From sequence record OR844650.1: DNA of 64,000 bases; one strand, 5' to 3'. Positions 4,510 through 46,906 of the stretch are shown piece by piece (within the stretch, counting starts at the first letter, position 1; each line of letters begins with the position of its first letter). Below the pieces are notes generated by a model. That model did not search any database, was not told the origin of the DNA, and saw nothing but the letters and a program-made list of their open reading frames with translations. The translations under genes and the position numbers were made by a program.

Positions 4510-5199
4510 TTATTTCCACCAACTGGTATCACGTCCATTAGACAAAGATTCATTGTACTGATGCCTAAAATTAGTTTTTGGATTATTGTTCATAGTACTA
4601 ATAAAATCAAATTTAACATTCTCTTGAATATATTTTTTAACACTATCTTTAAATTTAATAGTACTGAAGTCTAAATCTAGATGTTCATACAATACCGGAT
4701 GACAAAACTCATGTGTACGCAACGCTGGCATGGTATCCTTAATGTATTGCACAGTGTTAATCATTGCATTGTATTCCGGCATAGCACGCATCATCATTAG
4801 CTGAAAGTGTTCTTCCTCTGACATTGACTCATCCAAATCAATAACGACTTCATCATTTTTAGAGTCATAAACTTTAATGGTACTCTTGGTTGGATCAAGC
4901 ATAGCCCACTCTGGATACAGGCATGTTTTCCAAAAAGGATTATTGCACTGAAACATACTAATGAGATTTTGATCTTTATCAAAAATAGCAAATCCAAGAT
5001 CCGAACTTGGTTGTACTTCACATACACAAATATCGTAAGACGAGTCTTCAGTACTGAGTGAACCAACTACATTTGATATATGTGAATATGGAGTTTCTCT
5101 TGACTCCAACTGAAATGTACTTTCAATTCGATTGATTTGTGGATGTAATGTAATTACACCCCTTAGTACATATAAAATTCTATCTAAATCTTTAATCAA
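4510..5199 (-). CDS. family A protein (FQ motif)
   Basis: SEEEHFQLMM. Confidence 0.7.
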   Translation of the reverse strand: MIKDLDRILYVLRGVITLHPQINRIESTFQLESRETPYSHISNVVGSLSTEDSSYDICVCEVQPSSDLGFAIFDKDQNLISMFQCNNPFWKTCLYPEWAMLDPTKSTIKVYDSKNDEVVIDLDESMSEEEHFQLMMMRAMPEYNAMINTVQYIKDTMPALRTHEFCHPVLYEHLDLDFSTIKFKDSVKKYIQENVKFDFISTMNNNPKTNFRHQYNESLSNGRDTSWWK

Positions 5200-5774
5200 A
5201 ATTCTATCCCCGTATCAGTTAATTTCGTTCCGTCCATGTACTTAACAGTTATTTCAATGCGTCGATCAGTACTCAATTTTTGAAGATCATTGTAGTACAA
5301 TTTAAATTCTTCAAAGAACTCAAGTGGTGGAATATCGTATAAAGTACTAATCTGGAAGTGCTCAGGTAATCCAAATTCCAATATATCAATCTTAGGCATA
5401 AGTCCATCGGCTGCTGCACCTTCTGGAGTACTGCTATCTGCTACATAAAACATAGAATTACCATGACGCTGGATAACGAATATGCAATCATCTTCACTTA
5501 CATAAATCATATTTCCAAGGTATGGATCGTTATCACACCAATTATCATGGACGAGTTGTTCAACTTGAAGTAAATCTTTTATAATTCCCTGACCACTATC
5601 GTCAACTAGAATATGTAAACCAGAACAATCTTTGCTCAACCAGCGGTATCTTGCATCACATCCTGATTCCATAAATGGATATTTTGAAAAATCCATATCA
5701 GTACCATTATAAAACCAATCGTACCACTCATTACGCATACTAATCAGCTTAGTACTTAATTCTAATACATTCAT
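5196..5774 (-). CDS. family A protein (FQ motif)
   Basis: PEHFQISTLYD. Confidence 0.75.
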   Translation of the reverse strand: MNVLELSTKLISMRNEWYDWFYNGTDMDFSKYPFMESGCDARYRWLSKDCSGLHILVDDSGQGIIKDLLQVEQLVHDNWCDNDPYLGNMIYVSEDDCIFVIQRHGNSMFYVADSSTPEGAAADGLMPKIDILEFGLPEHFQISTLYDIPPLEFFEEFKLYYNDLQKLSTDRRIEITVKYMDGTKLTDTGIEF

Positions 5775-5781
5775 TTTAGTT

Positions 5782-6084
5782 TTATCCTCTTAATTTAATA
5801 GTACTGGCTGGATATTCTACAAAAGTATTATCTGGTAATCCTATACAGTAATAAGGTAAATACCCCATCTTTATATTAATACCAATTAAAATTCCTGTTT
5901 TATATGAAGTATTAATTCCATAGTAATCGTCTATATCAACAGCAAGTCCATATAATGATATGTTACAATCCTTGATGTATCGGTCAAACATTTTATACAT
6001 TGATGGATATAAAGTTCCATTGGATTGTCTCACCAAATCAGCCAACATTTTGATAGTACTGTTAATTAAATCTATACTGAACAT
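5782..6084 (-). CDS. hypothetical protein (family C-like)
   Basis: Helix then beta-rich C-terminus; packed ORF. Confidence 0.6.
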   Translation of the reverse strand: MFSIDLINSTIKMLADLVRQSNGTLYPSMYKMFDRYIKDCNISLYGLAVDIDDYYGINTSYKTGILIGINIKMGYLPYYCIGLPDNTFVEYPASTIKLRG

Positions 6085-6128
6085 CTTTGTACCTGCGAAA
6101 AAAGACCAGCAAACGCTGGCCTAAGAAT

Positions 6129-6410
6129 TTAAATTATTTCATAAAGACAATATACACCATCAACGCCAGCATCAGGAAAATCAACATAGAAATTGACACT
6201 AACAGTGTCGTAATCTATATCAGTGATTCGTCCGGTTTTACCTACACTTTTTACAAATATATCAGACCCAAGATACACAAACTCGAACTCGTCAGCATAC
6301 TCTTTTATGATATCTGCGAACCAACAACCACACCTAGGTTCTGTGTTAATAATTTCAAGATATAATGTAATATATTGTTCGTATGTCCATGTGTGTAGAT
6401 AAAAATCCAT
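6129..6410 (-). CDS. hypothetical protein (family C-like)
   Basis: FVYLGSDIFV. Confidence 0.6.
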   Translation of the reverse strand: MDFYLHTWTYEQYITLYLEIINTEPRCGCWFADIIKEYADEFEFVYLGSDIFVKSVGKTGRITDIDYDTVSVNFYVDFPDAGVDGVYCLYEII

Positions 6411-6420
6411 AGAAGTTTCC

Positions 6421-7158
6421 TTAGAAATATATCATACCCATCAATTCAGAATCGGCGGGGCGAGTATAACCTTGCTTCTTAACTTTAAAATAGAATGATT
6501 CATGCTCTTCTAAATTATAACGTTTTTTCAAGCAACGAGTGTATGTCTGACAATTTGGGTGAACCCATTCATAAATGTGAATGCCATTTTCGTCATAACC
6601 ATTTATACTACAACGATTTCCTTCATGCTTCATGAAGTTTTTACTTTTTTCAGTAAATTCTTTCACTGTAGTTGTATATGGAGATTTGTATTCAAAAGGA
6701 ACTTCAGTCATACGAAAATAATAGTATTCTTCGTCTTCATCATATCCCAAGAGCACTGTGTTAGTTTCACGTACATTGTAATGATTCTTACTTTTTAATT
6801 CATTTTCGTATATATCTTTCAGTACTTCTGCAAAAACTTCCTCGCTTGATGCATTAGGATTAGATACACCTGATACTCGGCGTTCAATAATAAAATCAGT
6901 GAATTTACGGTCTTCGGCAATATCTTCGTTCATATAAAGACTAACAAACTTATCCTTATATGTCTTTACACTATATTGCTTACTTTGCACTTCACTATAA
7001 ACATCTGCTAACATATTCTCCTGACCACACTGCACACCACTTACAGAATAAGCACATGCATGTTCAGCCATTACTGATGTTAACATTTGGAAATTTGCCA
7101 TGTTTAATTCATTCGCCATCTCTGTAGCGAAACGGATACGGTCAAGCATTTCACACAC
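6421..7158 (-). CDS. hypothetical protein
   Basis: 245-aa ORF, AAGGAG RBS, TGnTATAAT upstream (~7190). Confidence 0.75.
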   Translation of the reverse strand: MCEMLDRIRFATEMANELNMANFQMLTSVMAEHACAYSVSGVQCGQENMLADVYSEVQSKQYSVKTYKDKFVSLYMNEDIAEDRKFTDFIIERRVSGVSNPNASSEEVFAEVLKDIYENELKSKNHYNVRETNTVLLGYDEDEEYYYFRMTEVPFEYKSPYTTTVKEFTEKSKNFMKHEGNRCSINGYDENGIHIYEWVHPNCQTYTRCLKKRYNLEEHESFYFKVKKQGYTRPADSELMGMIYF

Positions 7159-7207
7159 TCCTTGTGTTAATTATTGTTCCTTACCCATTATTATATCATG
7201 AATTAAA

Positions 7208-8196: not shown

Positions 8197-8389
8197 GAAC
8201 ACGCTCACAATTAAGGCAATAAATGCACTCAATGTCAGGTCGCCATGATTTATCAAAATCTTTGTGTTGTTCTTCGGTGTATTCCGCATCATCATTAATA
8301 GGGAAGAAATCACCAGCACCAGTCGCCCAGTCTGAATCTAAACGGAAACGAGCTAATTGAGTACTGTTACAATATGGACATTTATTCAA
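8189..8389 (-). CDS. small C4 zinc-ribbon protein
   Basis: CPYC...CLNC. Confidence 0.7.
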   Translation of the reverse strand: MNKCPYCNSTQLARFRLDSDWATGAGDFFPINDDAEYTEEQHKDFDKSWRPDIECIYCLNCERVHD

Positions 8390-8666
8390 AATTTATTCCT
8401 TCTAACTGATATACGTTTAATGAAAATGACCCACTATTATTATCGCATCTGAAACACAGTGTTAAAGAACCATTAAAACTAACTACATCCGTACAGATAC
8501 ATTTTTCACCATTGGATATGATAGATTTTCCTATATATAAATCTCTTACTATAGTACGGTAATGTTGCCATAAAAAATAATACACACTTTCATAGTACTC
8601 ATCTTTTACATATGATAAGTATAAGAATTTATAAAATACTTGTATTTCCTTTAAGTTGTTTTTCAT
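8382..8666 (-). CDS. family C small protein
   Basis: EIQVFYKFLY; LYIGKSI; VSFNG. Confidence 0.75.
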   Translation of the reverse strand: MKNNLKEIQVFYKFLYLSYVKDEYYESVYYFLWQHYRTIVRDLYIGKSIISNGEKCICTDVVSFNGSLTLCFRCDNNSGSFSLNVYQLEGINFE

Positions 8667-8940
8667 TCTCCAACTCCAGTAAATTTACACCAATCCAATC
8701 AACATCACTATCAGTACTTAATTCCAATCGTAGCTTACCGCTATGACTAACAATATCGCGGAATTTGTATATTTTATTATCACGAACTATACACAAATCA
8801 TGGTAATATTCATGTAATTCATCCAAAAACTTTATCCATACCGAACGATAGATTTCACTGTAGAGATATTCTCCAGCATCAACCGTAGCGTATTGGATAT
8901 ACAAAAATTTGTATGTGAATTGTATATCATTTAATAACAT
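8629..8940 (-). CDS. family C small protein
   Basis: NDIQFTYKFLY; VSHSG. Confidence 0.75.
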   Translation of the reverse strand: MLLNDIQFTYKFLYIQYATVDAGEYLYSEIYRSVWIKFLDELHEYYHDLCIVRDNKIYKFRDIVSHSGKLRLELSTDSDVDWIGVNLLELENEKQLKGNTSIL

Positions 8941-8950
8941 ATGTAACCTC

Positions 8951-9262
8951 TTATAAATTCACCAACTTCACAACTTTAATCTCGATAAATCCCCTATCGG
9001 TTATTTCCTGAAATTGAACATGGATTATACCATTATATGATTGCACACCATAGAAATCGAATTTATCATTTCCATCGATAAAAGTACTGTAATTCTTTTT
9101 TATATATTCACCTACTGAATCTAAGTACTCAATATATAAATCAATAAATGGTTGTTCTTTGGATCGGTTATGTGAACCTATGTTGTTACTAACAAGGTAT
9201 ACATCATACAAATCATATAGTATCTTATAAGTGAATTGTATATCATTTAAATTTAATCCCAA
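8951..9262 (-). CDS. family C small protein
   Basis: NDIQFTYKILY; QSYNG. Confidence 0.75.
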   Translation of the reverse strand: MGLNLNDIQFTYKILYDLYDVYLVSNNIGSHNRSKEQPFIDLYIEYLDSVGEYIKKNYSTFIDGNDKFDFYGVQSYNGIIHVQFQEITDRGFIEIKVVKLVNL

Positions 9263-9519
9263 GGGAATATCTCCAACGGAATACTGGTAAATCCAAAATC
9301 AGTGTAGTACTGAACCTCAACTTTACCATCACGTCTAATGATTATATCAGAAAATTCTGCATGGTCATCACCAATAATAACAGTACTGAATTTTTTTTTA
9401 ATCTTACCACGAATCGTATGAATCATTTCAGTGCATGTGTCTTCTAGACTAGGGCTATCATTGTCGTGTGCTAAATCTTGAATAATCTTGTATGTTAGTA
9501 GGAAATCTTTATAATTCAT
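9253..9519 (-). CDS. family C small protein
   Basis: MNYKDFLLTYKII. Confidence 0.7.
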   Translation of the reverse strand: MNYKDFLLTYKIIQDLAHDNDSPSLEDTCTEMIHTIRGKIKKKFSTVIIGDDHAEFSDIIIRRDGKVEVQYYTDFGFTSIPLEIFPWD

Positions 9520-9791
9520 ATGTCCACCAAATCTATACTATATCTTTCATTAGTATTACTATCTATAAATGATAGTACTAATTTACCACCAAAACTATTA
9601 ACTTGTTCTATCTTCTGTTTTTTACCACGAATGATTATCTCACTATTAACAAAATATTCACGTATCATTATTAAGTGATTAATCCAGATAGTATGAGTGA
9701 ATGTGTTTTCTCGTATTGTATTGAGATATCTTCCATTGTGATGTAAATCAAACAAAACACTGTATGTATATTGTAGAACTTTATAATTCAT
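9516..9791 (-). CDS. family C small protein
   Basis: MNYKVLQYTYSVL; NSFGG. Confidence 0.75.
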   Translation of the reverse strand: MNYKVLQYTYSVLFDLHHNGRYLNTIRENTFTHTIWINHLIMIREYFVNSEIIIRGKKQKIEQVNSFGGKLVLSFIDSNTNERYSIDLVDI

Positions 9792-12858: not shown

Positions 12859-13401
12859 TTAGAGACAGTTCTGTACTATCTTATCAAAAGTACTACTGTC
12901 AATGTTATATTCATATAAAAATTTAAAATGTGAACCATAACGCATCATCAGATTAAACTCTTCTTCAGTATTAAATTTGTAATCATGAAGAGTTTCAGGG
13001 GTACATGTTAAACCTAAAAACTCAATTATTTCAGATGTTACATCATTTCCTGAATTGAAGTATTTAACCCAAACACATTTTCCTTGTGGGTTGTATTTTC
13101 TATATTCTCCTTCTAGTTCTCCTTTTATAATATGAGCCTTAACACTTATTAAATTATTACTATATCTTTCCTCGAAATAATTACCATACTGTGCTTTTAA
13201 TATTGTTGGTTTTTGTGTAGGAAGTAATTTGACTGAAGTAACTTCAATGCCGTTCTGTAATTCCTTTATATACGAAATGCATCCTTTTTCTTTAAAAACA
13301 ACAAATCCAGTAAAGATATCTTCGTCTTGTGATTGATTAATGCAATCATCAAAATTCAAAGTTTTATAAGTAACAGTTTTTTCTTTTCTAATAAATGCCA
13401 T
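12859..13401 (-). CDS. hypothetical protein with MORN-like repeat and degenerate family A motif
   Basis: GELEGEYRKYNPQGK; TEEEFNLMM; start moved to MAFIRK. Confidence 0.65.
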   Translation of the reverse strand: MAFIRKEKTVTYKTLNFDDCINQSQDEDIFTGFVVFKEKGCISYIKELQNGIEVTSVKLLPTQKPTILKAQYGNYFEERYSNNLISVKAHIIKGELEGEYRKYNPQGKCVWVKYFNSGNDVTSEIIEFLGLTCTPETLHDYKFNTEEEFNLMMRYGSHFKFLYEYNIDSSTFDKIVQNCL

Positions 13402-13509
13402 CATTATTCCTATGGAAACATCAATGAATATACGTGACGTTGATTTCATCAACATCAGTAGAATTACCATGCTACGCATGTCTAATTCTACAAGTACTAT
13501 TTTCTTTTA

Positions 13510-14023
13510 ATTAATATTGACGGGGTTTGCTTGAGCATATTTCATCCCCCCGCAGGGGAAAGAACAAAAAAGTTTGACGCTGGTGGCCTTCACATAGTTC
13601 ATATCACGAATTCTCTTACGAGACGAAAGCGGGTTGCTCTGTTTCTCTCTATCGCGGTTCTTGTAGCAACGGTCGTCGGTCTTAAACATCCCGACACATA
13701 ATACAAATACCATATGACCAGTACTTGTATTTGATTTCACAAAATTTGGACGCAACTATATTGTATAATTCCGACCGCATATTTCTTATGAAATCTCCCT
13801 TAGATAATTGGTAAGGTGCGATCCTTATATGTCTATCGAGGAACTCTCTTTATCCTATTGGAGTTCTTTATACAGCCGCATTGCCGTGAGTGGTTCAAAC
13901 TATGCCATCATCTAACGGGTTTCATCTGCTGTTCGTACTGAAAGGACTACTCATCTACCCTCTACATTTTCGAGTGGATTAGGCTTTTAATCATTTCCTT
14001 ATGGGAACCTTTCAGGATTAAAA
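13510..14023 (-). ncRNA. candidate large structured ncRNA (class unknown)
   Basis: ORF-poor, more GC-rich than flanks, many complementary segments; strand inferred from G-U pairs and an upstream TGnTATAAT. Confidence 0.5.
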
Positions 14024-14054
14024 AAAGGTGACTAACATATTATGTTGTCACCTT
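14021..14054 (-). terminator. rho-independent terminator or 5' hairpin of the ncRNA
   Basis: AAGGTGAC..AACAT / ATGTT..GTCACCTT stem plus T-run on the minus strand. Confidence 0.65.
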
Positions 14055-14082
14055 ATATTATATCATTAACTTATCATTTGTC

Positions 14083-14937: not shown

Positions 14938-14949
14938 ACATCTCCAGAC

Positions 14950-14982
14950 AAAAAAAGGACGAGATAACAAATCCCGTCCTTT
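14950..14982 (-). terminator. rho-independent terminator
   Basis: AAAGGACG / CGTCCTTT stem plus T-run. Confidence 0.65.
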
Positions 14983-36592: not shown

Positions 36593-36963
36593 CAGTACTC
36601 AACCTCTACATAAATAGATTCAGGAAACTTAGTCATATAATCTTCTGGATAGTTCTGCATTACTTTGATCATTTCTGCCTGTGTAGCACGGACGTATTCA
36701 ATTGGTGCTCCTGGTAAATTCCAGACAGTACTTTCCTGAAAGAATTCCTCTTCTGACAGTACTGTCAGATTTACAAAATCATTACGGTAATTTTTTGAAT
36801 CATCATATGTGAAGATTTTAAAAGACCCATTTTCATATAGTACAAGAACAAAATGGGAGAATTTTTGTAATGCACCACCAAGGCTTTCCACGACCGCATG
36901 ATTCAGTGTACAGATGACCTCTCTTTTCCTCATACCGAATTGAATTCTAATTTCTTTTTTCAT
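36592..36963 (-). CDS. family A protein (short type)
   Basis: EEEFFQESTVWN. Confidence 0.75.
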   Translation of the reverse strand: MKKEIRIQFGMRKREVICTLNHAVVESLGGALQKFSHFVLVLYENGSFKIFTYDDSKNYRNDFVNLTVLSEEEFFQESTVWNLPGAPIEYVRATQAEMIKVMQNYPEDYMTKFPESIYVEVEY

Positions 36964-37121
36964 AAAATCTCCTTCAGATTAGTACTGAATTTGTACAGAA
37001 TATTAGAACTGTATACAGCCTCTGTATCTGTATCCATAATCAAATCACCTTTGTTTAAATTACAAAAGTACTGATAACTGTGCTTAAAAGAATGTACTGA
37101 TATTAAAAAATCAAATTCCAT
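36960..37121 (-). pseudogene. truncated/chimeric duplicate of the 5' end of 36236..36592 (53 aa)
   Basis: MEFDFLISVHSFKHSYQYFCNLNKGDL nearly identical at DNA level, then diverges and stops. Confidence 0.65.
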
Positions 37122-37498
37122 CACACTTCCCCTAGATTGAAATGATTACAAAAATTATCTTCACCAGTACTGCACCAGATATCTATACATTCCCTGTGAA
37201 TACATTTAATTCTACGCTGTAATTCAATCATCTCTTCTAATGTACAGATGTACTTCTTATCAAATACTAATGCCTCCTGAAACAGTGCAGCATCATCAAG
37301 TACTGTATAGTCCAACATCTCGGTTGCTTTACCCCTAAACCCAGTACTAAAATCCATCAAATAAAAGTCAGCATTCCAGTACTTTAAAATCTTGTCCCTG
37401 GCGTAGTTTAAATCACCCTTGTATAAGTTAGAGTGCGTAACTAACTCACCAGTGTACATCCATGTCCTTGCACAAAATTCATTATATTTTATTTCCAT
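37121..37498 (-). CDS. family A protein (short type, NLxKGD subgroup)
   Basis: DAALFQEALVFDK; start moved to MEIKY. Confidence 0.75.
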   Translation of the reverse strand: MEIKYNEFCARTWMYTGELVTHSNLYKGDLNYARDKILKYWNADFYLMDFSTGFRGKATEMLDYTVLDDAALFQEALVFDKKYICTLEEMIELQRRIKCIHRECIDIWCSTGEDNFCNHFNLGEV

Positions 37499-37694
37499 CT
37501 TAATCTCTACTATAATTAATAAGGTAAACTCCAATATAAGGAGCACGTTGCGGGGGCGGGGTATTTTTTGTTTCAGGAAACATGAACTGTACTCTGAAAA
37601 ACACACTATAAAACTTTATATTAAACATATACCTTAGCATGTTTTTCAGCGGAAATTTTTTTGACCCCCTGCGGCCTGTCAAAATGAAACGTCT

Positions 37695-37919
37695 CTATTT
37701 ATTCAGCCTAGAAACCTTGATTTCTTCAATCCTTTTCATTGCACAAAGCCTTCGACTTGTCTTCTCGTACATATTCATTACACGCTGTAATGCATTATCT
37801 GTATTATCTGTAACTGCAATCTGAACCAAATATGTATCCTTCAAAATCGAATCCATCATGAATTCAAAACCTTTCACACTAAAGCAATATACCACTTCCG
37901 GCTCTTCAAACGTAATCAT
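37695..37919 (-). CDS. small hypothetical protein
   Basis: Packed ORF; possibly a very degenerate family B member. Confidence 0.55.
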   Translation of the reverse strand: MITFEEPEVVYCFSVKGFEFMMDSILKDTYLVQIAVTDNTDNALQRVMNMYEKTSRRLCAMKRIEEIKVSRLNK

Positions 37920-38136
37920 AATTCCAATCCCCTATTCCCTCTAACCTTCTAAGATATCTTGCGTAAATTATTTCGAAATATCTGTGCAACGAAATTACGG
38001 ATTGTTCATAATCATCATCCCTGAACATTGTGCATGTAAGAAAATTATTTAAACCGTAATCTAAACTGCACTCCAACTTCTCCTTTGCAACGGCACTATT
38101 ACTTGCACTTTTCATAATAAACCCTTTGTACCGCAT
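37906..38136 (-). CDS. small hypothetical protein
   Basis: Packed ORF. Confidence 0.5.
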   Translation of the reverse strand: MRYKGFIMKSASNSAVAKEKLECSLDYGLNNFLTCTMFRDDDYEQSVISLHRYFEIIYARYLRRLEGIGDWNYDYV

Positions 38137-38297: not shown

Positions 38298-38849
38298 TCA
38301 TACATTAACAACTTTATCGATGTAATCTTCTAACATATCAATATATCTGGTATTGGTTCTAACTAAAAGGTATGCAAATCCAGAGAACTCCTGTGTATAA
38401 TGCTTTACAGCGTACATACAACGAAGCTTATCATTGTCATACATTGTACTGTACTGAAACAAACTCTCGTCTGATAGCTCTAATAACGCTTGGGCTTCAC
38501 TTCTCGTGAACTTCATAGGGTCATGTACTGCATCACAAAAACAAACCTGTGTCTCGCTATTGAAACCCTGTGATAGATATATACCTTCACACTCTGAACG
38601 CACCGATACTGCATTATAACTATGTGTTGCCCCCATCATATCTGAACTCAAAACTAAAATCAACCCATTTTTATTTTTAATCAACAAATCTGACTTAAGG
38701 GATTTTATCTCCGTATGGGAAATATCACCAAATCTTCCTGGGACTTCAAACTTATCAACGTTGTATACAATCTTTTGTACTTGCTCTTTTAAACGCTTAA
38801 TTGCACTTCTGTCTTTTTCTAATGTATCTAATAAACTCATTGAACTCAT
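38298..38849 (-). CDS. family A protein
   Basis: DESLFQYSTMYD; start moved to MSSMS. Confidence 0.75.
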   Translation of the reverse strand: MSSMSLLDTLEKDRSAIKRLKEQVQKIVYNVDKFEVPGRFGDISHTEIKSLKSDLLIKNKNGLILVLSSDMMGATHSYNAVSVRSECEGIYLSQGFNSETQVCFCDAVHDPMKFTRSEAQALLELSDESLFQYSTMYDNDKLRCMYAVKHYTQEFSGFAYLLVRTNTRYIDMLEDYIDKVVNV

Positions 38850-38859
38850 TGTACTTTCC

Positions 38860-39204
38860 TTACATATTTGTACCGAACAAAACGGAACTTTGAATGCCAT
38901 TAATCGACACTTCATGTACATATATATTTTGTCTGAATACCTGAAGCAATTGAACTAAACTTTGTTGCATAATAATATGCATATGTACATTATCAAAGGC
39001 CGTTTCGTATTGGAATCGTGCCGCTTCATCTTCTATGAAATTCGGAACTTGGACTGGATTCTCAAAATTTGTCCTTGTACTGAACTGTACATCATTGTCC
39101 TGTACCTTAATACCATATGAATTATCATTGTTATCAACTACATCAAATTCAATTAAACTACCATCTTTACTGACGTTTACTATATAAACTGAAAATCGAC
39201 TCAT
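38860..39204 (-). CDS. family A protein (short type)
   Basis: EAARFQYETAFD. Confidence 0.7.
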   Translation of the reverse strand: MSRFSVYIVNVSKDGSLIEFDVVDNNDNSYGIKVQDNDVQFSTRTNFENPVQVPNFIEDEAARFQYETAFDNVHMHIIMQQSLVQLLQVFRQNIYVHEVSINGIQSSVLFGTNM

Positions 39205-39716
39205 AAACCTATTTCCTCTAAATCTTTGACAAATGTATCATAATCCGATAATGACAAAAATATGTCTGTACTGATGTTTTGACGTAATGTATTAAACAAA
39301 TTATGTACCTGTAATAAATCAGGTGCATAAATCAGGGATTGCTGGAAATACGATTCTTCTGTATCTAATATATCCCTGCACTCAATTTCACGAACTCGTT
39401 GGTATATTGAATTTAATAATACATTTTCATCTTTGAGCATTGGAAGGTATCGGATGTACATGTTCTCCATCAACTCATCTTGGATTGAACCCCTGAACTG
39501 CAACACGTATTCAAAACACATCACTACATCTTGTAGGTAATTGGCACTGTACTGATTACTATACACGATTTTATGACAACTGAACTCGGAATCATTTCTG
39601 AACCAATTGTTACCCTCTTTCCTGTACTTATGACTAAGCTTCCCATCCTCCAACGCTCGAATGAACTTCATAATGTTAATTGCAAAATCATATGAATGAT
39701 GCTTGTGTTGATGCAT
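39201..39716 (-). CDS. family A protein
   Basis: EESYFQQSLIY. Confidence 0.75.
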   Translation of the reverse strand: MHQHKHHSYDFAINIMKFIRALEDGKLSHKYRKEGNNWFRNDSEFSCHKIVYSNQYSANYLQDVVMCFEYVLQFRGSIQDELMENMYIRYLPMLKDENVLLNSIYQRVREIECRDILDTEESYFQQSLIYAPDLLQVHNLFNTLRQNISTDIFLSLSDYDTFVKDLEEIGL

Positions 39717-39920: not shown

Positions 39921-40544
39921 CTATATATCCAACCCTTTTACAACATCTACGAAATGTTCAAACACTTCTTTTGAAAAATAACCACCTTCACAAAAAAGCA
40001 TACTAAACGGTGGCAGCATGTCCGATAACTCTTTAGCTAAATTGATTTCTGCTCTTAACTCTTGAACATCAATGATATCATGTACTAAAGATAATTGAAA
40101 CATGAATGCATCTACATCTTCATTCATTTCTGAATTGTAATATAACTCTTCAGGGAATTTGTCGGTTTCGTAATAATAAAAAACTTTATTGTTGAACACA
40201 CCACTAATAGGAACATCATTTTCATCTTTCTTTGAAATGTTTGTTTCCCATGACTCTATATTATTAGGAACAAAAAAATCATAGGCTGATTTTGAACCCT
40301 GAACTGAATCCAACTTTATTCCATAATATTCCGTATCCATGTATTTCTGCTGTAATGTAATACCACGTGTACTGACATTCACTTGGAATATATCATCTTT
40401 ATCTGGAACGCTAAATGGAATACATAACACTGAATTCTCAGGGTATTTGGCAATGAATGCATCCAGCACTTTATTAAGCACTGGAATGGCAATTTTACTG
40501 TACTGCATCAAATCATACATTTTAATTCTGGTCATATCATTCAC
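39921..40544 (-). CDS. family A protein
   Basis: DAFMFQLSLVHD. Confidence 0.75.
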   Translation of the reverse strand: MNDMTRIKMYDLMQYSKIAIPVLNKVLDAFIAKYPENSVLCIPFSVPDKDDIFQVNVSTRGITLQQKYMDTEYYGIKLDSVQGSKSAYDFFVPNNIESWETNISKKDENDVPISGVFNNKVFYYYETDKFPEELYYNSEMNEDVDAFMFQLSLVHDIIDVQELRAEINLAKELSDMLPPFSMLFCEGGYFSKEVFEHFVDVVKGLDI

Positions 40545-41064
40545 CTGTGTATGTTTTCACCCTTAGCGATTCAAAATCCCATACATCACTGATTGTACCA
40601 TTGTGCCTGTAATCATAATATTCTACTAATACATTATACAATAACTTCAACGATACAAATTCATGATTCCACGGAGCTTTATTCTCATGAACACATTTGG
40701 TGATATAAGGTATAATATATAAACTAAACAACACTAATGGTGAATGTATACATTGCATTTGAAAATATTCTTCTTCTTGCATACAATGTTCAGGAATAAT
40801 TAGATCATAATGTGTCTCAAATAAATGTAAACCTATTGTGGTTTTTTTCGTATCACATGCGTACCATATTGTACTATCCGAAATAAATGGAATGATACCA
40901 TTATTGTTTGCAATGTACATCATATGGTAAGAGCGATTTGTCTTGTTAAATATCTCGATACTTTCGATATTACTACAAATCATGTATTCAATGCAATCAA
41001 TGATCTTATCTTTAAATGTACCAATTTCATTGAATGTCATTGATTTCTGCACTTCACTGCTCAT
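40537..41064 (-). CDS. family A protein
   Basis: EEEYFQMQCIH. Confidence 0.75.
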   Translation of the reverse strand: MSSEVQKSMTFNEIGTFKDKIIDCIEYMICSNIESIEIFNKTNRSYHMMYIANNNGIIPFISDSTIWYACDTKKTTIGLHLFETHYDLIIPEHCMQEEEYFQMQCIHSPLVLFSLYIIPYITKCVHENKAPWNHEFVSLKLLYNVLVEYYDYRHNGTISDVWDFESLRVKTYTGE

Positions 41065-41603
41065 ATTTTCTCCTTAAAAAAATTCAAATACTCTTCATTG
41101 AAAGCATATGTATCATCTTTTTTGTTATGCACCACATAATCATAAAGAGCTATGAATGCAGGGATTATGATCTTACATGATTTATTATTGTATTTGTACT
41201 GCTCCAAATCAACGGTATTCAATTTAGCAATAAGCATAGCAACAAAGATATCTTCATGGTGGTGTACTGTACTGTACTGAAAATATTCATCCTCTCCAAT
41301 ATCAGGATGATATAACGGTATATCCAAATTATTACGAATTGACATTTTATATTTTTGTAATGCAGCTAAATGCATGAACCACAATCTATCTTCATGGAAA
41401 GATGGAAAAATAATTTTGTCTGTGCTAATAAAAATTTCTTCATTTCGATTATTTGTCACAAGAGGTGCATACATTTTAATTTTTGCAGATCTAATAATTA
41501 AATTAAAAATATAATGAATCTTATGAACTGCACTTGATGCATCTTCGTATGTACTTGGGATTATGAAACTCACTATATGTTCTCCTTTAAAATGATTACA
41601 CAT
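41061..41603 (-). CDS. family A protein
   Basis: EDEYFQYSTVHH. Confidence 0.75.
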   Translation of the reverse strand: MCNHFKGEHIVSFIIPSTYEDASSAVHKIHYIFNLIIRSAKIKMYAPLVTNNRNEEIFISTDKIIFPSFHEDRLWFMHLAALQKYKMSIRNNLDIPLYHPDIGEDEYFQYSTVHHHEDIFVAMLIAKLNTVDLEQYKYNNKSCKIIIPAFIALYDYVVHNKKDDTYAFNEEYLNFFKEKI

Positions 41604-41630
41604 GATAACAGCTTTGGTCTTCTATGTCAA
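41602..41630 (-). promoter_or_regulatory. sigma70-type promoter
   Basis: TTGACA-17-TATCAT. Confidence 0.6.
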
Positions 41631-41655: not shown

Positions 41656-42162
41656 TTACGATACAGGCGTTCTGGGCATGTTTATTTGAATTTCATTGTA
41701 CAAATCATCAATATATAGACATGAAAACGATACACTTTCTTTAACTATATTGTTGTGATAAAGCATTTTAAATGCAATATAGAAAAATAAATCAATATCA
41801 TCATGTACTAAATTCTGCTGGAACCACCACTCTTCTGTTAAATCTTGTGCATTAAAATCATCAGGAACTACAATTGACGACATATCAGAATCTTCTTTGT
41901 ACTCAAACCACATGTCGTCATTCGGATAACGTTCATGCTTCTCTGGGTAACAATTGGTGGGATTAAATGCTAAAATATAAAATGCCGTCGAAGAATGTTC
42001 TTTATTAAAAAATGAATTATTCCACACCTGATATTTTTCACCAACATCAAGCTCTTCTGTTACTGATTTTATTGCACATAATGTACTGTATATTGTTTCT
42101 ATCTTGTGAACATATTTAAATGCAGCATCTAAGCTGAACTCTAAATCATACATGTACTGCAT
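41656..42162 (-). CDS. family A protein
   Basis: EEWWFQQNLVHD. Confidence 0.75.
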   Translation of the reverse strand: MQYMYDLEFSLDAAFKYVHKIETIYSTLCAIKSVTEELDVGEKYQVWNNSFFNKEHSSTAFYILAFNPTNCYPEKHERYPNDDMWFEYKEDSDMSSIVVPDDFNAQDLTEEWWFQQNLVHDDIDLFFYIAFKMLYHNNIVKESVSFSCLYIDDLYNEIQINMPRTPVS

Positions 42163-42482
42163 AAAATTACCTCAACTAAAGCAAGGACTGTATTGAATTC
42201 CACTATACTTGTAATTCCTTGAAGGTACATGTACTTTGCTACTACATATTTCTGTACTAAATTATAATTTTTAAATTCCTCAAAATTGTAATTTAGAACA
42301 AAATCTGTACTCAAAAATAACTTATGCATCTCTAATGCACTTTGATAATACGCGTACAACTCACTGATATCAATACTGGTTAAATTATATTGTTCATATC
42401 TATGATACGGGATGGCTTCAATTTCAATACTATAAAACCATTCTCTTAACTTATTAATATCAAATGTATTATTCAGCTTCAT
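42141..42482 (-). CDS. hypothetical protein
   Basis: Packed ORF. Confidence 0.6.
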   Translation of the reverse strand: MKLNNTFDINKLREWFYSIEIEAIPYHRYEQYNLTSIDISELYAYYQSALEMHKLFLSTDFVLNYNFEEFKNYNLVQKYVVAKYMYLQGITSIVEFNTVLALVEVILCSTCMI

Positions 42483-43035
42483 AACTCAATATCTCCATTA
42501 AGCACTCATAAACACCATCAATCGCATAAGCACAAAAATTGAAATTAATTTTGTGATTCTTGTGTAATGGACTATTGTGTACTGTACTCATTATGACATT
42601 ATAAAATAACAAACGCACTGGTACAAGCATTGAACCTTGGAAAAATTCTTCCTCTGATTTATATGTATTGTACTCTATTGTTTTGTTCGTTTCTTTATTA
42701 TATGTTACCATTACTAATGGGGAATTTTTATTATACCATGCGTACTCTAAATCATTCTTTCCAATAACAGCCCCAGGGGCAAAATCCAAAAGACCAATAA
42801 CACTACGGGCATTTGGGTTATCAGGTGTATTGAATCGTTTATCAAAATGACTCGTGCACGTAATATATGTATTGTACTTCGATGGAATAATACCAATACA
42901 TTTGTGGATGTGACGCTTGTAATCTTTCTGTGCATTATATAAGGCTGCAACAATACAAGCTAACTTTTGTCCCATAAGGATTGCATTAGCGTAGGTGTAC
43001 TGAATATCATTGCTGGTACGGTACTTCGAGGTCAT
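42469..43035 (-). CDS. family A protein
   Basis: EEEFFQGSML; N-terminal NDIQYTY echoes family C. Confidence 0.75.
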   Translation of the reverse strand: MTSKYRTSNDIQYTYANAILMGQKLACIVAALYNAQKDYKRHIHKCIGIIPSKYNTYITCTSHFDKRFNTPDNPNARSVIGLLDFAPGAVIGKNDLEYAWYNKNSPLVMVTYNKETNKTIEYNTYKSEEEFFQGSMLVPVRLLFYNVIMSTVHNSPLHKNHKINFNFCAYAIDGVYECLMEILSYEAE

Positions 43036-43318
43036 AATATTTCCTTTGCCATATCATGGGCTTAAAATCAATAACAGCTTTCTGTATCTTTTTTAATAAT
43101 AAGACATCATAACCACCCGTGTCAATCACTAATTGCTGTTGGAACAATTCTTCATCGGATAATGTATTGAAATCTACAAAATAATCTGTAACTATCGAAT
43201 CATTTAAATGTGCCATGTACCAACCTGAACTTCTTGAATAAATCAAATTCCACCCATCGTCATCATCTTCTAATTCAACATAAATCATATCTGGGGTATA
43301 CATCATTTTATACTTCAT
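43007..43318 (-). CDS. family A protein (short type)
   Basis: DEELFQQQLVID. Confidence 0.75.
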   Translation of the reverse strand: MKYKMMYTPDMIYVELEDDDDGWNLIYSRSSGWYMAHLNDSIVTDYFVDFNTLSDEELFQQQLVIDTGGYDVLLLKKIQKAVIDFKPMIWQRKYYDLEVPYQQ

Positions 43319-43814
43319 AACTATATCCTTGCATCAAAATATCATAAACGTTTGAAAGGTACGGAATTTTGATATAAAATTTAAAACCCTTAATTAAAGG
43401 ATTCGCGTACAATGAACTGAATAACTTTAGATAATGTATTTGACGAGGACTGTATAATAACGATTTCTGAAATAATTCAGAACTACAATCTGAACTAATA
43501 TCAATTAAATCAATTCGTGCTTCTACTTCATCATTTTGTTTCAAATCATAAAAGAAATAATCGTTTGTGTTGACCCACAAATACCCTTCACTATTTTCGT
43601 ATATAACAGGAGATGCTTGTTCTGGATTGCCTTGGGCAAATGCTGCAAAACAAACTTTTGCATTACTTTCATCTTTAAACAAAAACGATAATTTATCATA
43701 TCTATCTTCTATGCGTAAATCACCTATATAAATGTACTTATGCATAGAATGATTATTCTTGAGCATAAGCATTACTGTACTAATCTTGTGTGCTAATAAT
43801 TCTATCTCATTCAT
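43308..43814 (-). CDS. family A protein (MNEIELLAHKIST pair)
   Basis: SSELFQKSLLY. Confidence 0.75.
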   Translation of the reverse strand: MNEIELLAHKISTVMLMLKNNHSMHKYIYIGDLRIEDRYDKLSFLFKDESNAKVCFAAFAQGNPEQASPVIYENSEGYLWVNTNDYFFYDLKQNDEVEARIDLIDISSDCSSELFQKSLLYSPRQIHYLKLFSSLYANPLIKGFKFYIKIPYLSNVYDILMQGYSYEV

Positions 43815-43837: not shown

Positions 43838-43912
43838 CATCATCTTCTAATTCAACATAAATCATATCTTGGGGTATACATCATTTTATACTTCATAACT
43901 ATATCCTTGCAT
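43838..43912 (-). repeat. near-exact copy of 43261..43334, carrying a frameshifted remnant of the next gene's start
   Basis: 74/75-bp direct repeat differing by one inserted T (ATATCTGGGG vs ATATCTTGGGG). Confidence 0.85.
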
Positions 43913-44440
43913 TAATAAATCATAAACTACATGGACTAAATTTAATTGAATATAAAATTTTAAACCTTTAATTAATGGATTCAAATGCATTGTACTGAAT
44001 AAAATTAGATACATCATCTCATGCGGTTTTGTGATTAATGATTTTTGAAATACTTCAGCTTCATCATAAGGGTCTATGAACTGAAATTTGTCTTCATCAT
44101 AATTTGTATTGGAATGCTGATATATAAAATAATCATCATTGGTATTGTACCACAAATACCCTTCGAATCCTGTACTTACATTTCTTGTCAATGGTGATGC
44201 TGATACTGGATTTGAACTGATTAATGCACCTACACCAACAATCCCCGTTGTATCATATTCGATTTCAACATCAATGTCAATATCAATGTATTTCCTTGCG
44301 ATATCTGCGTTTATGGACAAATATAAACTACCACCTGTCCTCTGACTCAGGATTCCATCTATCTGCGATATAGGATGGTTGTTATTGAGGATAAGCATTA
44401 TTGTACTTATCTTGTGTGCTAATAACTCTATCTCATTCAT
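43886..44440 (-). CDS. family A protein (MNEIELLAHKIST pair)
   Basis: EAEVFQKSLI. Confidence 0.75.
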   Translation of the reverse strand: MNEIELLAHKISTIMLILNNNHPISQIDGILSQRTGGSLYLSINADIARKYIDIDIDVEIEYDTTGIVGVGALISSNPVSASPLTRNVSTGFEGYLWYNTNDDYFIYQHSNTNYDEDKFQFIDPYDEAEVFQKSLITKPHEMMYLILFSTMHLNPLIKGLKFYIQLNLVHVVYDLLMQGYSYEV

Positions 44441-44788: not shown

Positions 44789-45175
44789 CTAATCTTTCCA
44801 TTTAATAGGATACTCCTTTCCTTGTACTATATATGACAAAATCCATCCGTAATGAATAGGATGATTTTTATCTGAATCAGGAATAAAATATAAAGCTGTA
44901 CTTGGATTATGACTGAATAAATCTTTATTGTCAAATGTAAAATGTGATAATATAATTTTCCTTGTACTTGGACGAATAACATTCTTAACACTGAACTCTG
45001 TTCCTTTGTATTTCTCCGAGAATTCAAATAATGCATCTGTAATTAAATCACTGAACTCTTGGATTACAAAATTCTGATAAAATGCATTAATCTCTTTTAA
45101 CTCTGTATACAATTCACTTCTGGTATTCAAAAGGAATATTACTTGTTTAAGATCCTGTACTATTGTTGGGTTCAT
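44789..45175 (-). CDS. family C-like protein
   Basis: SEKYKGTEFSV after long helix. Confidence 0.65.
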   Translation of the reverse strand: MNPTIVQDLKQVIFLLNTRSELYTELKEINAFYQNFVIQEFSDLITDALFEFSEKYKGTEFSVKNVIRPSTRKIILSHFTFDNKDLFSHNPSTALYFIPDSDKNHPIHYGWILSYIVQGKEYPIKWKD

Positions 45176-45410
45176 ATTTGTTTATCTCATTATGTACCTT
45201 AAGCATAAAAATTTGCATATGAATTTTTTGTTCAAGGTGCTTGATAAATTTCTGTACTGTATCTTCTTGATCTTTTGTACCAAGATAAAATAACATATTA
45301 AATTCAGATAATCTCAGAGAGAAATCTTCCTCTCCCCCTCGTAAACAAAAATCCCTGTACTTTGAAGCGTACAATAAAGAATCTACCTTTTTATATATTT
45401 GGGTCTGCAT
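45147..45410 (-). CDS. family B small protein
   Basis: FYLGTKDQED. Confidence 0.75.
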   Translation of the reverse strand: MQTQIYKKVDSLLYASKYRDFCLRGGEEDFSLRLSEFNMLFYLGTKDQEDTVQKFIKHLEQKIHMQIFMLKVHNEINKYEPNNSTGS

Positions 45411-45595
45411 TGTATCTCCATTTTCAAGGACCATATGAGCTTATCAACGCATTGATCCTGTGCTATTGTCCCTAGATAAAATAATACATCAAAATCTGAT
45501 ATTTTGATATTAAAAGGATCGGTGTGTACATTTTTAATAAACTCCCTGTACTTCATTTCATATGCATTAGGTATATTCTTATATGTCAATTTCAA
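45383..45595 (-). CDS. family B small protein
   Basis: FYLGTIAQDQ. Confidence 0.75.
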   Translation of the reverse strand: MKLTYKNIPNAYEMKYREFIKNVHTDPFNIKISDFDVLFYLGTIAQDQCVDKLIWSLKMEIQCRPKYIKR

Positions 45596-45896
45596 TGATC
45601 CTCCCTGACATACCTTGTATTAGCTTATCATACATATCGAGCATCACTTTTTGAATACTAATTAGTACTGGCATCGTGCAAATATCAATGTCGTATACTA
45701 AGCTGTACTGGAATAATTCATCTTCCTGCATTTGTACTAAATTAGGTAAAAGATAATTGTCTGCCTCTTCATCCTGGTACTTGAAATGCATAACACCATC
45801 CTTTTTGTACAAAAGAATGTCAATATCACCCAACTCTTCGGCATAACCAAATATACATATATTAGATGTTTTTGCTATATTAAATTTCATCTCCAC
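45579..45896 (-). CDS. family A protein (short type)
   Basis: EDELFQYSLVYD. Confidence 0.75.
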   Translation of the reverse strand: MEMKFNIAKTSNICIFGYAEELGDIDILLYKKDGVMHFKYQDEEADNYLLPNLVQMQEDELFQYSLVYDIDICTMPVLISIQKVMLDMYDKLIQGMSGRIIEIDI

Positions 45897-46132
45897 CTCT
45901 CTCCGTCAGCACAAGAGTACTGGTACGTTGTCGTTAGGGTAGGGACCATGTTTGTAATGGGCATATTATTAACAATAACGGTAACAGGCATAAGAATCGT
46001 CTCTACTCTACTCTGTCCTGTCCTTGTACAATTCATCTTCTGCATTTCATCTGAATCCATGAAATACAATACAAATGGTGCAATCCCAAGAACAATACAC
46101 AAGACGATAAGGAAATTTAAAAAATTTAACAT
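45887..46132 (-). CDS. small membrane-anchored protein
   Basis: N-terminal TM helix FLNFLIVLCIVLGIAPFVLYF; two Cys in the exported part. Confidence 0.7.
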   Translation of the reverse strand: MLNFLNFLIVLCIVLGIAPFVLYFMDSDEMQKMNCTRTGQSRVETILMPVTVIVNNMPITNMVPTLTTTYQYSCADGERWR

Positions 46133-46161
46133 AATTTTTACCCTATGATTAACGTTAGTGT

Positions 46162-46190
46162 ACTATATCAGTAATGAAAAGTACTGTCAA
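46162..46190 (-). promoter_or_regulatory. sigma70-type promoter
   Basis: TTGACA-17-TATAGT with AGTACT in the spacer region. Confidence 0.7.
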
Positions 46191-46191
46191 G

Positions 46192-46596
46192 CTAGTATTG
46201 CACTGTTCTAATGAAAGTACCTGAACTCATGGATTTAAGCTTATGAACCTCTTCCTGTATACCCTTGAGCAACTCTAAAGGTATAGGTACATCATGTACT
46301 AAGCTGTACTGAAAATATTCTTCTTCAGATAAAGTACTAACATCTGGAACGCCAATTTTAGTTAGATAATCTTGATGTGTTGACCAATAAATTATATCTT
46401 CAGTAGAATTGTACTCCCCATATACTGAACAATATTGATGAATATCTTTCCTGTACCCTTGAGCAATAAAGAACTTATCTACTGCATTACCAGCATTAAT
46501 AGAATTCACTTCGATTGTCACAGTACTTGAGCTTGTATAACTCTTAATATTATCAGTACTTTTAATACTCAACTGTGTGTTCTTCATAATCACCAT
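46192..46596 (-). CDS. family A protein (short type)
   Basis: PDVSTLSEEEYFQYSLVHD. Confidence 0.75.
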   Translation of the reverse strand: MVIMKNTQLSIKSTDNIKSYTSSSTVTIEVNSINAGNAVDKFFIAQGYRKDIHQYCSVYGEYNSTEDIIYWSTHQDYLTKIGVPDVSTLSEEEYFQYSLVHDVPIPLELLKGIQEEVHKLKSMSSGTFIRTVQY

Positions 46597-46906
46597 TAGG
46601 CTCCTGTTTAGATTCTTTCATTAGTACTATCATCTTATGTACTAATGGCATAGGAAACTCTAAATCCCATACTAATGATTCCTGAAAGTATTCCTCTGGT
46701 GATAAAGTACTTAAATCTTTAATATCAACGTGCTTGTATATTTTATTTTCGTAATTAACAAATGATATATATAAATCACTAACATAAGAATCATAGGTAA
46801 TTGTGAATGGCTTACCCTTGTAATCCATTACATCTCTACATAGACTACTTTTGATATATGTATGTTCAAATGATTTATATACCTTGAGTTGTATATTAGT
46901 TTTCAT
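46562..46906 (-). CDS. family A protein (short type)
   Basis: DLSTLSPEEYFQESLVWD. Confidence 0.75.
   Translation of the reverse strand: MKTNIQLKVYKSFEHTYIKSSLCRDVMDYKGKPFTITYDSYVSDLYISFVNYENKIYKHVDIKDLSTLSPEEYFQESLVWDLEFPMPLVHKMIVLMKESKQEPNGDYEEHTVEY

Follow-up and report, generated by a model that had tools for sequence, protein, structure and literature searches.

We analyzed a 64,000-nucleotide (nt) stretch of sequence record OR844650.1 (hereafter the window), which comes from an Asteriusvirus jumbo coliphage of the 121Q/phAPEC6 group, one of the 'Rak2-like' jumbo myoviruses. Over window positions 30000-38000, identity is 100% to Escherichia phages ECO103 4-12-1 and EC22.5-2, 98.7% to phAPEC6 and 95% to 121Q (all genus Asteriusvirus), and the window corresponds to phAPEC6 gp387c-gp504c, nearly all of which are annotated there as 'hypothetical protein'. 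All sizeable open reading frames (ORFs) in the window lie on the minus strand, and G+C content is 30-35% as far as ~52 kb. Many of these ORFs belong to a single lineage-specific multigene family of this large double-stranded DNA phage, which we call the FQ family after an invariant phenylalanine-glutamine pair. The family has ~47 copies in the window and ~62 in the 352-kb genome (OR844650.1), or about one tenth of the roughly 550 phage genes.

An earlier note made from the sequence alone had reported that many divergent ORFs here share a short acidic-FQ motif. The motif is real and far above chance: the pattern FQx[SNQAT][TLCVMI][VILMTS] occurs in 45 of the 168 non-nested minus-strand ORFs, against 1.06 on average, and 6 at most, in residue-shuffled ORFs, and the exact regular expression of the earlier note matches 37 ORFs. 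All-against-all BLAST places the motif ORFs in several clusters, and an iterated profile hidden Markov model (HMM) built on the window ORFs united 42 of these ORFs (E <= 5e-9, Z = 168). A larger HMM, from these 42 aligned with 138 outside homologues (180 sequences), added 4510-5199, 38860-39204 and 22267-22776 and left 31948-32484 and 12859-13479 (where FQ has become FN) as borderline, giving a window total of 42 solid and 3-5 degenerate members. The consensus motif is [LM][ST]EEE[YLF]FQxS[TL][VI][YWH][DN], in which F and Q never vary, either among the 42 window members or across the alignment of 180 sequences. Two larger proteins had also been listed as carriers of the motif; 4510-5199 is a member by the 180-sequence HMM, whereas 14083-14970 contains the motif-like string DDLMFQLML without support from the HMM.

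The first count, about 50 ORFs plus degenerate versions, was roughly right for the window but too low for the genome. Searching the genome and relatives with the motif HMM, as had been proposed, yielded 17 further members in a piecewise scan of the rest of OR844650.1, all on the same strand, as well as the 138 homologue clusters described below. Fifteen of the 17 lie between record positions 9 and 49 kb (9033-49015) and form a second cluster, with members that map to phAPEC6 gp039c, gp054c, gp084c, gp087c, gp088c, gp093c, gp103c, gp120c, gp121c, gp127c-129c, gp131c and gp134c; the others are dispersed (Table 1). The phAPEC6 counterparts of the main-array members lie within gp404c-466c, and the coding sequence of the 42 solid members covers 67% of 17641-46906, in agreement with the statement that the family fills most of 17.6-46.9 kb. 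The products are 103-229 amino acids (aa) long and mostly acidic (isoelectric point, pI, mostly 4-5.5), and no transmembrane-like segments were found in them except for a probable start-codon artefact. The motif lies at 0.50-0.75 of protein length, in the C-terminal half as first noted. The two subtypes that had been distinguished are also real, with F[YF][LF]D following the motif in nine members and [IL]Q[KN]xM present in 9 of 12 short members, but the FYLD element is predicted to be a beta-strand rather than the end of a helix.

The earlier note read the motif as a portable tag on largely unrelated N-terminal domains. Instead, the FQ family is very probably one highly divergent family with a single domain. 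In long members the alignment to the family HMM runs over positions 1-160 of 165, and in short members (103-137 aa) it begins at position ~40-50, which means that only the first helix is missing from them. The N-terminal part also contains a second conserved element, a [YF][ILMV]x[YF] strand, with 3.2 bits of information compared to 4.4-4.5 bits for F and Q. This site is Y or F in 38 of the 42 window members and in 157 of the 180 sequences overall, and the median distance from it to the downstream FQ is 38 residues (interquartile range 35-42). Two further features are conserved: an I-x-I strand that follows and, within the N-terminal helix, a heptad-like pattern of hydrophobic residues. In an alignment-free test, the strand was at its expected position in 16/42 window members (3.8 +/- 1.8 in shuffled sequences) and in 57/135 outside homologues (13.8 +/- 3.5 in shuffled sequences).

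AlphaFold2 models were made of two members, each representing another subfamily, and they agree in the order of their elements: helix, beta-meander, motif helix, helix, strand, helix. Model 1 (33976-34464; mean predicted local distance difference test score, pLDDT, 78.9; predicted template modelling score, pTM, 0.75) has a helix at residues 3-21, six strands between 28 and 97 and a short helix at 99-103, followed by helix 109-115 (EEYYFQN), helix 121-135, strand 141-144 (FYFD) and helix 145-152. Model 2 (21702-22283, from the other main BLAST cluster and 16% identical; pLDDT 68, pTM 0.54) has helix 5-23, seven strands within 31-119, motif helix 125-134, helix 140-157, strand 164-167 and helix 177-192. 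A Foldseek search of model 1 against BFVD recovered only paralogues, from 121Q, SP27, RaK2 and, weakly, GAP32, aligned over their full length with template modelling scores (TM) of 0.5-0.73 at 16-28% identity. A profile search of 1.84 billion representative proteins returned 138 clusters at E <= 1e-3, of which 131 have FQ. All 138 are 65-210 aa long, and therefore the FQ module is never found fused to another domain; likewise, no Pfam domain was present in 49 matches from a 5.8-billion-protein collection. The end-to-end HMM alignment, the second N-terminal element, the shared element order of the models, the full-length BFVD matches and the lack of fusions all argue against a portable tag.

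The motif is the most confidently predicted region (pLDDT 93-97 in model 1), and in both models it begins a succession of short helix, tight turn and long helix. An [ST]-x-x-E sequence flanked by hydrophobic residues is the textbook helix N-capping box with hydrophobic staple, and the [ST]EEE of the motif may form one. The F and the following [TL][VI][YWH] would be core residues, and the invariant Q may be held by a conserved polar contact, be it internal to the fold or to a partner. Between Q and S the residue is hypervariable and therefore probably exposed. On this picture the FQ string would be the start of a helical hairpin packing on the sheet and not a detachable tag, and we consider an invariant core or hinge to be its best reading.

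Conservation of the motif acts at the protein level, since synonymous codons vary at the invariant residues (TTT 22 and TTC 20 for F; CAG 27 and CAA 15 for Q) and the synonymous substitution rate (dS) is not reduced in the motif. We therefore rejected a cause at the level of DNA or RNA. Between orthologues, dS in the motif segment is normal or higher, and the nonsynonymous rate (dN) is lowest there. Relative to a syntenic metagenomic contig (L002, ~76% nucleotide identity, dS ~0.8-1.1), dN/dS is 0.15 for the motif, 0.29 for the C-terminal part and 0.37 for the N-terminal part. All parts are under purifying selection, and the N-terminal part evolves fastest.

We take the family to have expanded by tandem duplication, its copies then diverging extremely. 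Median pairwise identity among members is 16.5%, and tandem duplication fits because adjacent genes are more similar than distant ones (21.5% identical versus 17.3% for non-adjacent genes over match columns, permutation p < 0.0002). Syntenic arrays are found in L001-L004, with some gene gain and loss in the metagenomic relatives (~87% nucleotide identity for L003 and L004, ~76% for L002), and divergent arrays with invariant FQ exist where no DNA can be aligned, with 22 members in 20.6 kb in L007 and FQ in 5/5 in L006. A further contig of 357.8 kb (L008, from GCA_012813795.2) encodes 15 members; within its array, at 4882-6294, is a 470-aa gene with an MCPsignal domain (PF00015). When distant members were compared by tblastn with 50,697 phage records, only 36 Asteriusvirus records matched, or none. 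The motif was not confirmed by tblastn in RaK2 or GAP32, which appear solely as structural matches in BFVD, and an IMG/VR search for related loci with P0026 as query found nothing.

In the main array, 56 of the 70 gene junctions overlap, 15 of these by 4 nt. Seven intergenic gaps are at least 35 nt long, and three of the seven contain a TTGACA-N16-18-TATAAT site matching at 11 or more of 12 positions (chance level 0.02 in shuffled gaps and 0.14 in random array segments of the same size; P < 0.0005). Terminator-like hairpins precede two of the gaps (Table 1); the hairpin at 24983-25002 and the promoter-like site after it are likely to be an operon boundary inside the array. Because near-consensus sigma-70 promoters lie in the gaps and gene ends overlap, we infer that the array is organized as polycistronic operons that the sigma-70 holoenzyme of the host reads early. 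PA5oct, a distant relative, relies on host RNA polymerase for infection and has a long early block of small uncharacterised genes (PMC7318152).

FQ-family products have no recognizable known domain. Searches of Pfam, NCBIfam and PADLOC with all 42 members gave isolated chance-level matches only, and in PHROGs the members are spread over many separate groups of 'unknown function'. A MORN-like domain had been suggested in 12859-13479, where we found no Pfam family at E <= 0.1. A sequence-profile search of the PDB gave 0 matches, and Foldseek searches of the PDB with both models gave nothing significant (best E 3.1 and 0.27, TM < 0.26). The family is described neither in the literature searched (full-text searches and genome papers) nor in Pfam, while lineage-specific expansion in a jumbo phage is already known as a phenomenon.

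We compared the members in gp404c-466c, the second-cluster members, gp291c and gp318c with the published virion proteome of phAPEC6 (PMC7247149, Table 1 therein), and none of these mapped members is among its 62 virion proteins. Six common motif tetrapeptides, which cover 26 of the 42 window members, are absent from the 49 proteins of the JP4 virion dataset, a partial check of motif strings only. These results argue against packaging of FQ-family products, and capsid targeting is unlikely because the mapped members are missing from the phAPEC6 virion proteome.

Taken as a whole, we give an even chance to the reading that these proteins are binders for early host interaction or counter-defence, forming a single-domain family that expanded in tandem. 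Each product would be a small soluble stand-alone protein with one alpha+beta domain, predicted to consist of an amphipathic helix at the N-terminus (which the short type lacks), an antiparallel beta-meander of 6-7 strands, the short motif helix, a long helix, one strand (the FYLD element) and a C-terminal helix. Host RNA polymerase would transcribe the overlapping operons early in infection, and the products would be cytoplasmic and not packaged into virions. The conserved FQ helical-hairpin core would present a hypervariable sheet and loops, with which each paralogue might bind, neutralise or redirect a different host protein, such as a defence or abortive-infection effector, so that the family would act as a viral 'poly-immunity' array. 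The functional step taken alone, that each paralogue binds a different host protein, is a tentative suggestion that we place somewhat short of even. Very divergent paralogues, each under purifying selection and with one invariant element, are compatible with many specificities and one shared feature.

Several observations weigh against this reading. When proteins were cut 8 residues before FQ, BLAST and iterated HMM searches joined the resulting N-terminal parts only into small subclusters, and hhalign on subfamily profiles linked 15 of 820 pairs at >= 90% probability. To this extent the description of the N-terminal parts as unrelated held, but the parts have a common aromatic strand and a common predicted topology. 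Even full-length subfamily profiles were linked by hhalign in just 68 of 861 pairs; pairwise methods are too weak for this family, and the common N-terminal features are seen through the family-wide HMM and the models. The common N-terminal fold rests on topology and one conserved strand and not on superposition; model 2 has medium confidence (pTM 0.54), and the prediction is poor for residues 31-70 of model 1. The absolute invariance of F and Q in 180 sequences, with ~9-12% column identity otherwise, exceeds the usual structural need and would fit a shared functional contact. Values of dN/dS of 0.3-0.4 give no signal of diversifying selection at the level of gene segments. The promoter sites are consensus matches and not transcript data, and virion proteins of low abundance can escape mass spectrometry. 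Finally, homology searches point to no function, with Pfam, NCBIfam, PADLOC, the PDB sequence search and Foldseek against the PDB all negative and the PHROGs groups all of unknown function.

The invariance of F and Q also invites a reading closer to that of the earlier note, which had the shared module bind one hub and the variable parts recognise different targets. In such a library of adaptors, an invariant FQ face would dock on one partner (a host protease, chaperone, RNA polymerase or phage factor) and the variable sheet would recruit a different target for each paralogue. The low dN/dS of the motif (0.15) while the rest diverges, the hypervariable residue between Q and S, as for a surface position beside a conserved contact, and the ~62 stable paralogues under purifying selection are all in keeping with it. 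We nevertheless regard it as unlikely: the motif is helix-forming, hydrophobic, flanked by core-type residues and the most confidently predicted part of both models, and there are no modular fusions, no candidate partner and no likeness to known adaptor domains. A more specific form, in which the ~60 paralogues are single-domain substrate receptors that place an (S/T)EEExFQxS face on a common machine while the sheet delivers different host proteins, seems less probable still; if true, it would be the phage counterpart of the receptor libraries of eukaryotic viruses, on a fold without a PDB match. It is similarly doubtful that the proteins serve the phage internally, as nucleic-acid-binding proteins, regulators or assembly chaperones, or are duplicates of little individual function. 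The analysis revealed no host link, the family adjoins other expanded families of small proteins, and jumbo phages tolerate extra DNA; against this stand the acidic pI, which does not suit nucleic-acid binding, the absence of the proteins from virions, and the combination of purifying selection, synteny in relatives at 70-90% nucleotide identity and arrays in relatives with unalignable DNA.

Two further explanations take the motif as a processing signal, and we consider both very improbable. The [LMI][ST]E of the motif resembles the (L/I)xE site of T4-type prohead proteases, which would suggest cargo with a T4-like targeting or cleavage signal that is packaged in the head and then injected. 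A gp21-like prohead protease is indeed among the phage genes (gp227c), and phAPEC6 is reported to have an inner body (PMC7247149). The T4 parallel drawn in the earlier note nonetheless fails, because the motif is internal and not an N-terminal leader, the virion data given above are negative for both phAPEC6 and JP4, and sigma-70-type promoters indicate early rather than late expression. The resemblance of EE(x)YFQ(x)S to 3C/TEV-type sites, as in EEGYFQGS at 32481-32930, would alternatively suggest that cleavage follows Q in these proteins, or that they serve to decoy a protease specific for Q. Yet the motif is predicted to be helical and within a folded core, the Y position is as often L or F, and no 3C-like protease was seen, the phAPEC6 table listing proteases of the prohead type only.

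The interpretation offered by the earlier note is partly supported, and a library of diversified binders built around one constant element is still a viable idea. The family occurs in a well-studied group of therapeutic-candidate coliphages (121Q, PBECO4, phAPEC6, Sharanji and others), and the invariant FQ dipeptide is a clean mutational handle. Laboratory strains of E. coli K-12 are among the hosts. If these are early host-interaction or counter-defence proteins, the array would be a library of natural binders against E. coli proteins and a tractable model of how a phage builds and maintains a multigene arsenal; if all share one hub, it would represent a new takeover strategy.

Table 1. FQ-family members and regulatory features. 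Coordinates are window positions unless the record is named; E-values are from the window HMM (the iterated HMM built on window ORFs) unless the 180-sequence HMM is named.
Position	Strand	Feature	Length (aa)	Motif	E-value
4510-5199	-	FQ member, divergent	229	MSEEEHFQLMMM	7.7e-8 (180-sequence HMM)
5196-5774	-	FQ member, long type, outlier 12 kb from main array	192	LPEHFQISTL	2.5e-18
12859-13479	-	Borderline/degenerate relative, FQ lost	206	NTEEEFNLMM	0.003 (180-sequence HMM)
17641-18138	-	FQ member	165	SGELFQMSTL	2.6e-11
18957-19493	-	FQ member	178	TEELLFQYSLI	3.6e-16
21089-21640	-	FQ member	183	SEEQHFQLSTL	6.4e-15
21702-22283	-	FQ member, AlphaFold model 2 target	193	GEENYFQLSTI	1.5e-24
22267-22776	-	Degenerate member	169	IEEIEFQNNTL	3e-4 (180-sequence HMM)
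23198-23779	-	FQ member	193	VEEELFQMSTV	1.3e-21
25001-25567	-	FQ member	188	TDEVLFQLSTI	2e-23
25512-26075	-	FQ member	187	LESAMFQLSLI	2.9e-20
26598-27101	-	FQ member	167	SEESYFQNSLI	3.1e-25
27089-27502	-	FQ member, short type	137	TPDELFQYSLV	1.3e-16
27486-27848	-	FQ member, short type	120	SEEELFQESTI	4e-18
27814-28308	-	FQ member	164	TEEMYFQESCI	6.6e-30
28305-28781	-	FQ member	158	TEEEFFQYSTV	5e-24
28841-29425	-	FQ member	194	NQEYYFQLSLL	1.1e-26
29385-29726	-	FQ member, short type	113	DEGELFQESLV	2.2e-17
29705-30148	-	FQ member	147	GEEEMFQYSTV	3.3e-19
30072-30434	-	FQ member, short type, LIQKEMK	120	QEDELFQESLVWD	2.1e-17
31033-31593	-	FQ member	186	TEENIFQNSVL	5.7e-18
31948-32484	-	Borderline member	178	FDEQCFQLSCT	0.0025 (180-sequence HMM)
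32481-32930	-	FQ member	149	TEEGYFQGSTV	1.4e-19
33235-33549	-	FQ member, short type	104	HESFIFQESLVWD	5e-9
33546-33998	-	FQ member, FYLD	150	SEEYYFQNSTV	2.2e-31
33976-34464	-	FQ member, AlphaFold model 1 target	162	SEEYYFQNSTL	1.7e-34
34464-34907	-	FQ member	147	TEEYYFQQSLI	3.2e-25
34904-35374	-	FQ member	156	SEEYYFQQNTI	2.1e-25
35376-35870	-	FQ member	164	SEEYYFQQSTV	6.4e-31
35880-36239	-	FQ member, short type	119	DDGELFQAALV	2.3e-17
36236-36592	-	FQ member, short type	118	DTAELFQESLV	2.2e-22
36592-36963	-	FQ member, short type	123	SEEEFFQESTVW	9.4e-16
37121-37606	-	FQ member, length from GTG start	161	DDAALFQEALV	2.4e-19
38298-38921	-	FQ member	207	SDESLFQYSTM	9.9e-24
38860-39204	-	Degenerate member	114	DEAARFQYETA	3.7e-5 (180-sequence HMM)
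39201-39716	-	FQ member	171	TEESYFQQSLI	1.9e-22
39921-40544	-	FQ member	207	VDAFMFQLSLV	1.9e-10
40537-41064	-	FQ member	175	QEEEYFQMQCI	1e-20
41061-41603	-	FQ member	180	GEDEYFQYSTV	1e-15
41656-42162	-	FQ member	168	TEEWWFQQNLV	6.6e-20
42469-43035	-	FQ member	188	SEEEFFQGSML	1.4e-23
43007-43318	-	FQ member, short type	103	SDEELFQQQLV	3.7e-15
43308-43814	-	FQ member	168	CSSELFQKSLL	1e-22
43886-44440	-	FQ member	184	DEAEVFQKSLI	2.7e-24
45579-45896	-	FQ member, short type	105	QEDELFQYSLV	6.9e-16
46192-46596	-	FQ member, short type	134	SEEEYFQYSLV	2.3e-21
46562-46906	-	FQ member, short type	114	SPEEYFQESLVWD	1.6e-17
OR844650.1 199842-200237 and 212661-213062	same strand	Dispersed FQ members; correspond to phAPEC6 gp291c, gp318c			
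21675-21697	-	Terminator-like hairpin in gap between 21702-22283 and 21089-21640			
24983-25002	-	Terminator-like hairpin and T run, then promoter-like site (10/12) at 24941-24969			
28815-28844	-	Sigma-70 consensus promoter-like site, TTGACA-18-TATAAT, extended -10 TG, 12/12, in gap upstream of 28305-28781			
~41602-41630	-	Sigma-70-like promoter, TTGACA-17-TATCAT, 11/12, T-rich terminator-like tail before it			
~46162-46190	-	Sigma-70-like promoter, TTGACA-17-TATAGT, 11/12, in gap upstream of 45887-46132			

Several starts in the longest-ORF list are probably placed too far upstream. The long GTG-start ORF at 37121-37606 looks over-extended, with a hydrophobic N-terminus; it is probably of the short type because its phAPEC6 orthologue, gp447c, is annotated at 125 aa. 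The public label of gp447c, 'amidohydrolase 3', is probably wrong, since no Pfam or NCBIfam match supports it and the protein is an ordinary FQ-family member. The promoter-like site at ~41602-41630 shares bases of its -10 element with the first ATG of ORF 41061-41603 in its longest form, and the start annotated for the phAPEC6 orthologue, 30 nt downstream, fits better with the promoter. Promoter-like sites also occur in the ORF-free gaps 13756-14082 (327 nt) and 52898-53116 (219 nt). No tRNA genes or Rfam families were found anywhere in the window. Genes for an RpoD-like sigma factor (gp066c) and a DNA methyltransferase (gp123c) also lie in the second FQ cluster of phAPEC6.

Two other paralogous families were found in the window. 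The larger has ~30 ORFs of 63-104 aa on the minus strand, at 46896-52897 plus 31583-31973 and 45147-45595, with a near-invariant LGT(N/D)(Y/F)Q(E/D) motif followed by a helix and no copies in the scanned parts of the genome outside the window; a link between this LGTNYQE-motif family and the FQ family was rejected (hhalign probability 0.2%). The smaller consists of five adjacent minus-strand ORFs of 88-103 aa at 8382-9791. Where the FQ and LGTNYQE-motif arrays end, G+C rises from ~0.30-0.33 to ~0.38 (~52000-64000), and the phAPEC6 annotation likens some small genes of this region to T4-like, rV5-like and N4-like phage genes; the region is possibly a mosaic of acquired genes.

The adaptor proteins of poxviruses and giant viruses with F-box, BTB or ankyrin domains form sets of dozens of paralogues with a modular two-domain build and a recognisable hub-binding domain. 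They have in common with the idea of an FQ-family adaptor library a constant interface combined with variable target recognition. The FQ family differs in having one domain, no profile match and no fusions, and none of the 42 members has a Pfam match to F-box, BTB or any other adaptor domain, so the F-box/BTB parallel of the earlier note does not hold. The T4 internal proteins, like the FQ family, are diverse small proteins with a short shared sequence containing acidic residues and an L-x-E-like string. The FQ motif, unlike the T4 targeting sequence, is internal and lies in a folded helix of virion-absent proteins, whose genes have early sigma-70-type promoters. The likeness to p32/Mam33 is limited to acidity and the order alpha, seven beta strands, alpha, alpha, and a relationship to MAM33/p32 (gC1qR) was not supported by Foldseek (E 0.6-2.8, TM 0.14-0.23, root mean square deviation 17-20 A). 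Polo-box matches in Foldseek were rejected at TM below 0.25.

Among phages, the early block gp34-gp105 of PA5oct (PMC7318152) resembles the FQ array in being composed of same-strand small genes of unknown function and in depending, as the array probably does, on host RNA polymerase, and counter-defence genes of T-even phages are described as expanded by segmental or tandem amplification (eLife 2022, PMC9391042; Nat Commun 2026, PMC13096335). In contrast to both cases, the FQ family has no homologue outside Asteriusvirus-like phages by tblastn. In RaK2, ~10% of genes were reported to be paralogous (PMC3622015). The zinc-ribbon expansion of Bacillus phage G, at ~35 copies, was called an 'unprecedented lineage-specific expansion' (Iyer et al. 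2021, PMC7824862), and is likewise a case in which a jumbo phage has multiplied a small domain to very many paralogues whose function is only guessed at. The FQ family, at ~62 copies, exceeds it, and differs in its fold, its lack of metal ligands and its occurrence in a Rak2-like enterobacterial phage.

The SUKH superfamily forms 'poly-immunity' arrays and has viral expansions such as herpesvirus US22 (Zhang, Iyer & Aravind 2011, PMC3113570), its paralogues being read as binders that each neutralise a different effector. Its core fold has four helices and six strands, arranged as a hairpin plus a four-stranded meander (PMC3113570); the FQ-family models, at medium confidence, have four helices and 7-8 strands. 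Membership of the FQ family in this superfamily fails, as there is no Pfam or PDB profile match and no PDB Foldseek match, and the invariant FQ has no SUKH counterpart; the FQ locus also has no linked toxin genes that we could see, and ~62 copies compared to 6-21 in the cited genomes. Both families nonetheless consist of tandem, lineage-specific and very divergent small single-domain alpha+beta paralogues with a similar count of structural elements, and both have been recruited by large DNA viruses. By analogy, the poly-immunity arrays of SUKH proteins may be the closest known parallel to the way in which the FQ family could work.

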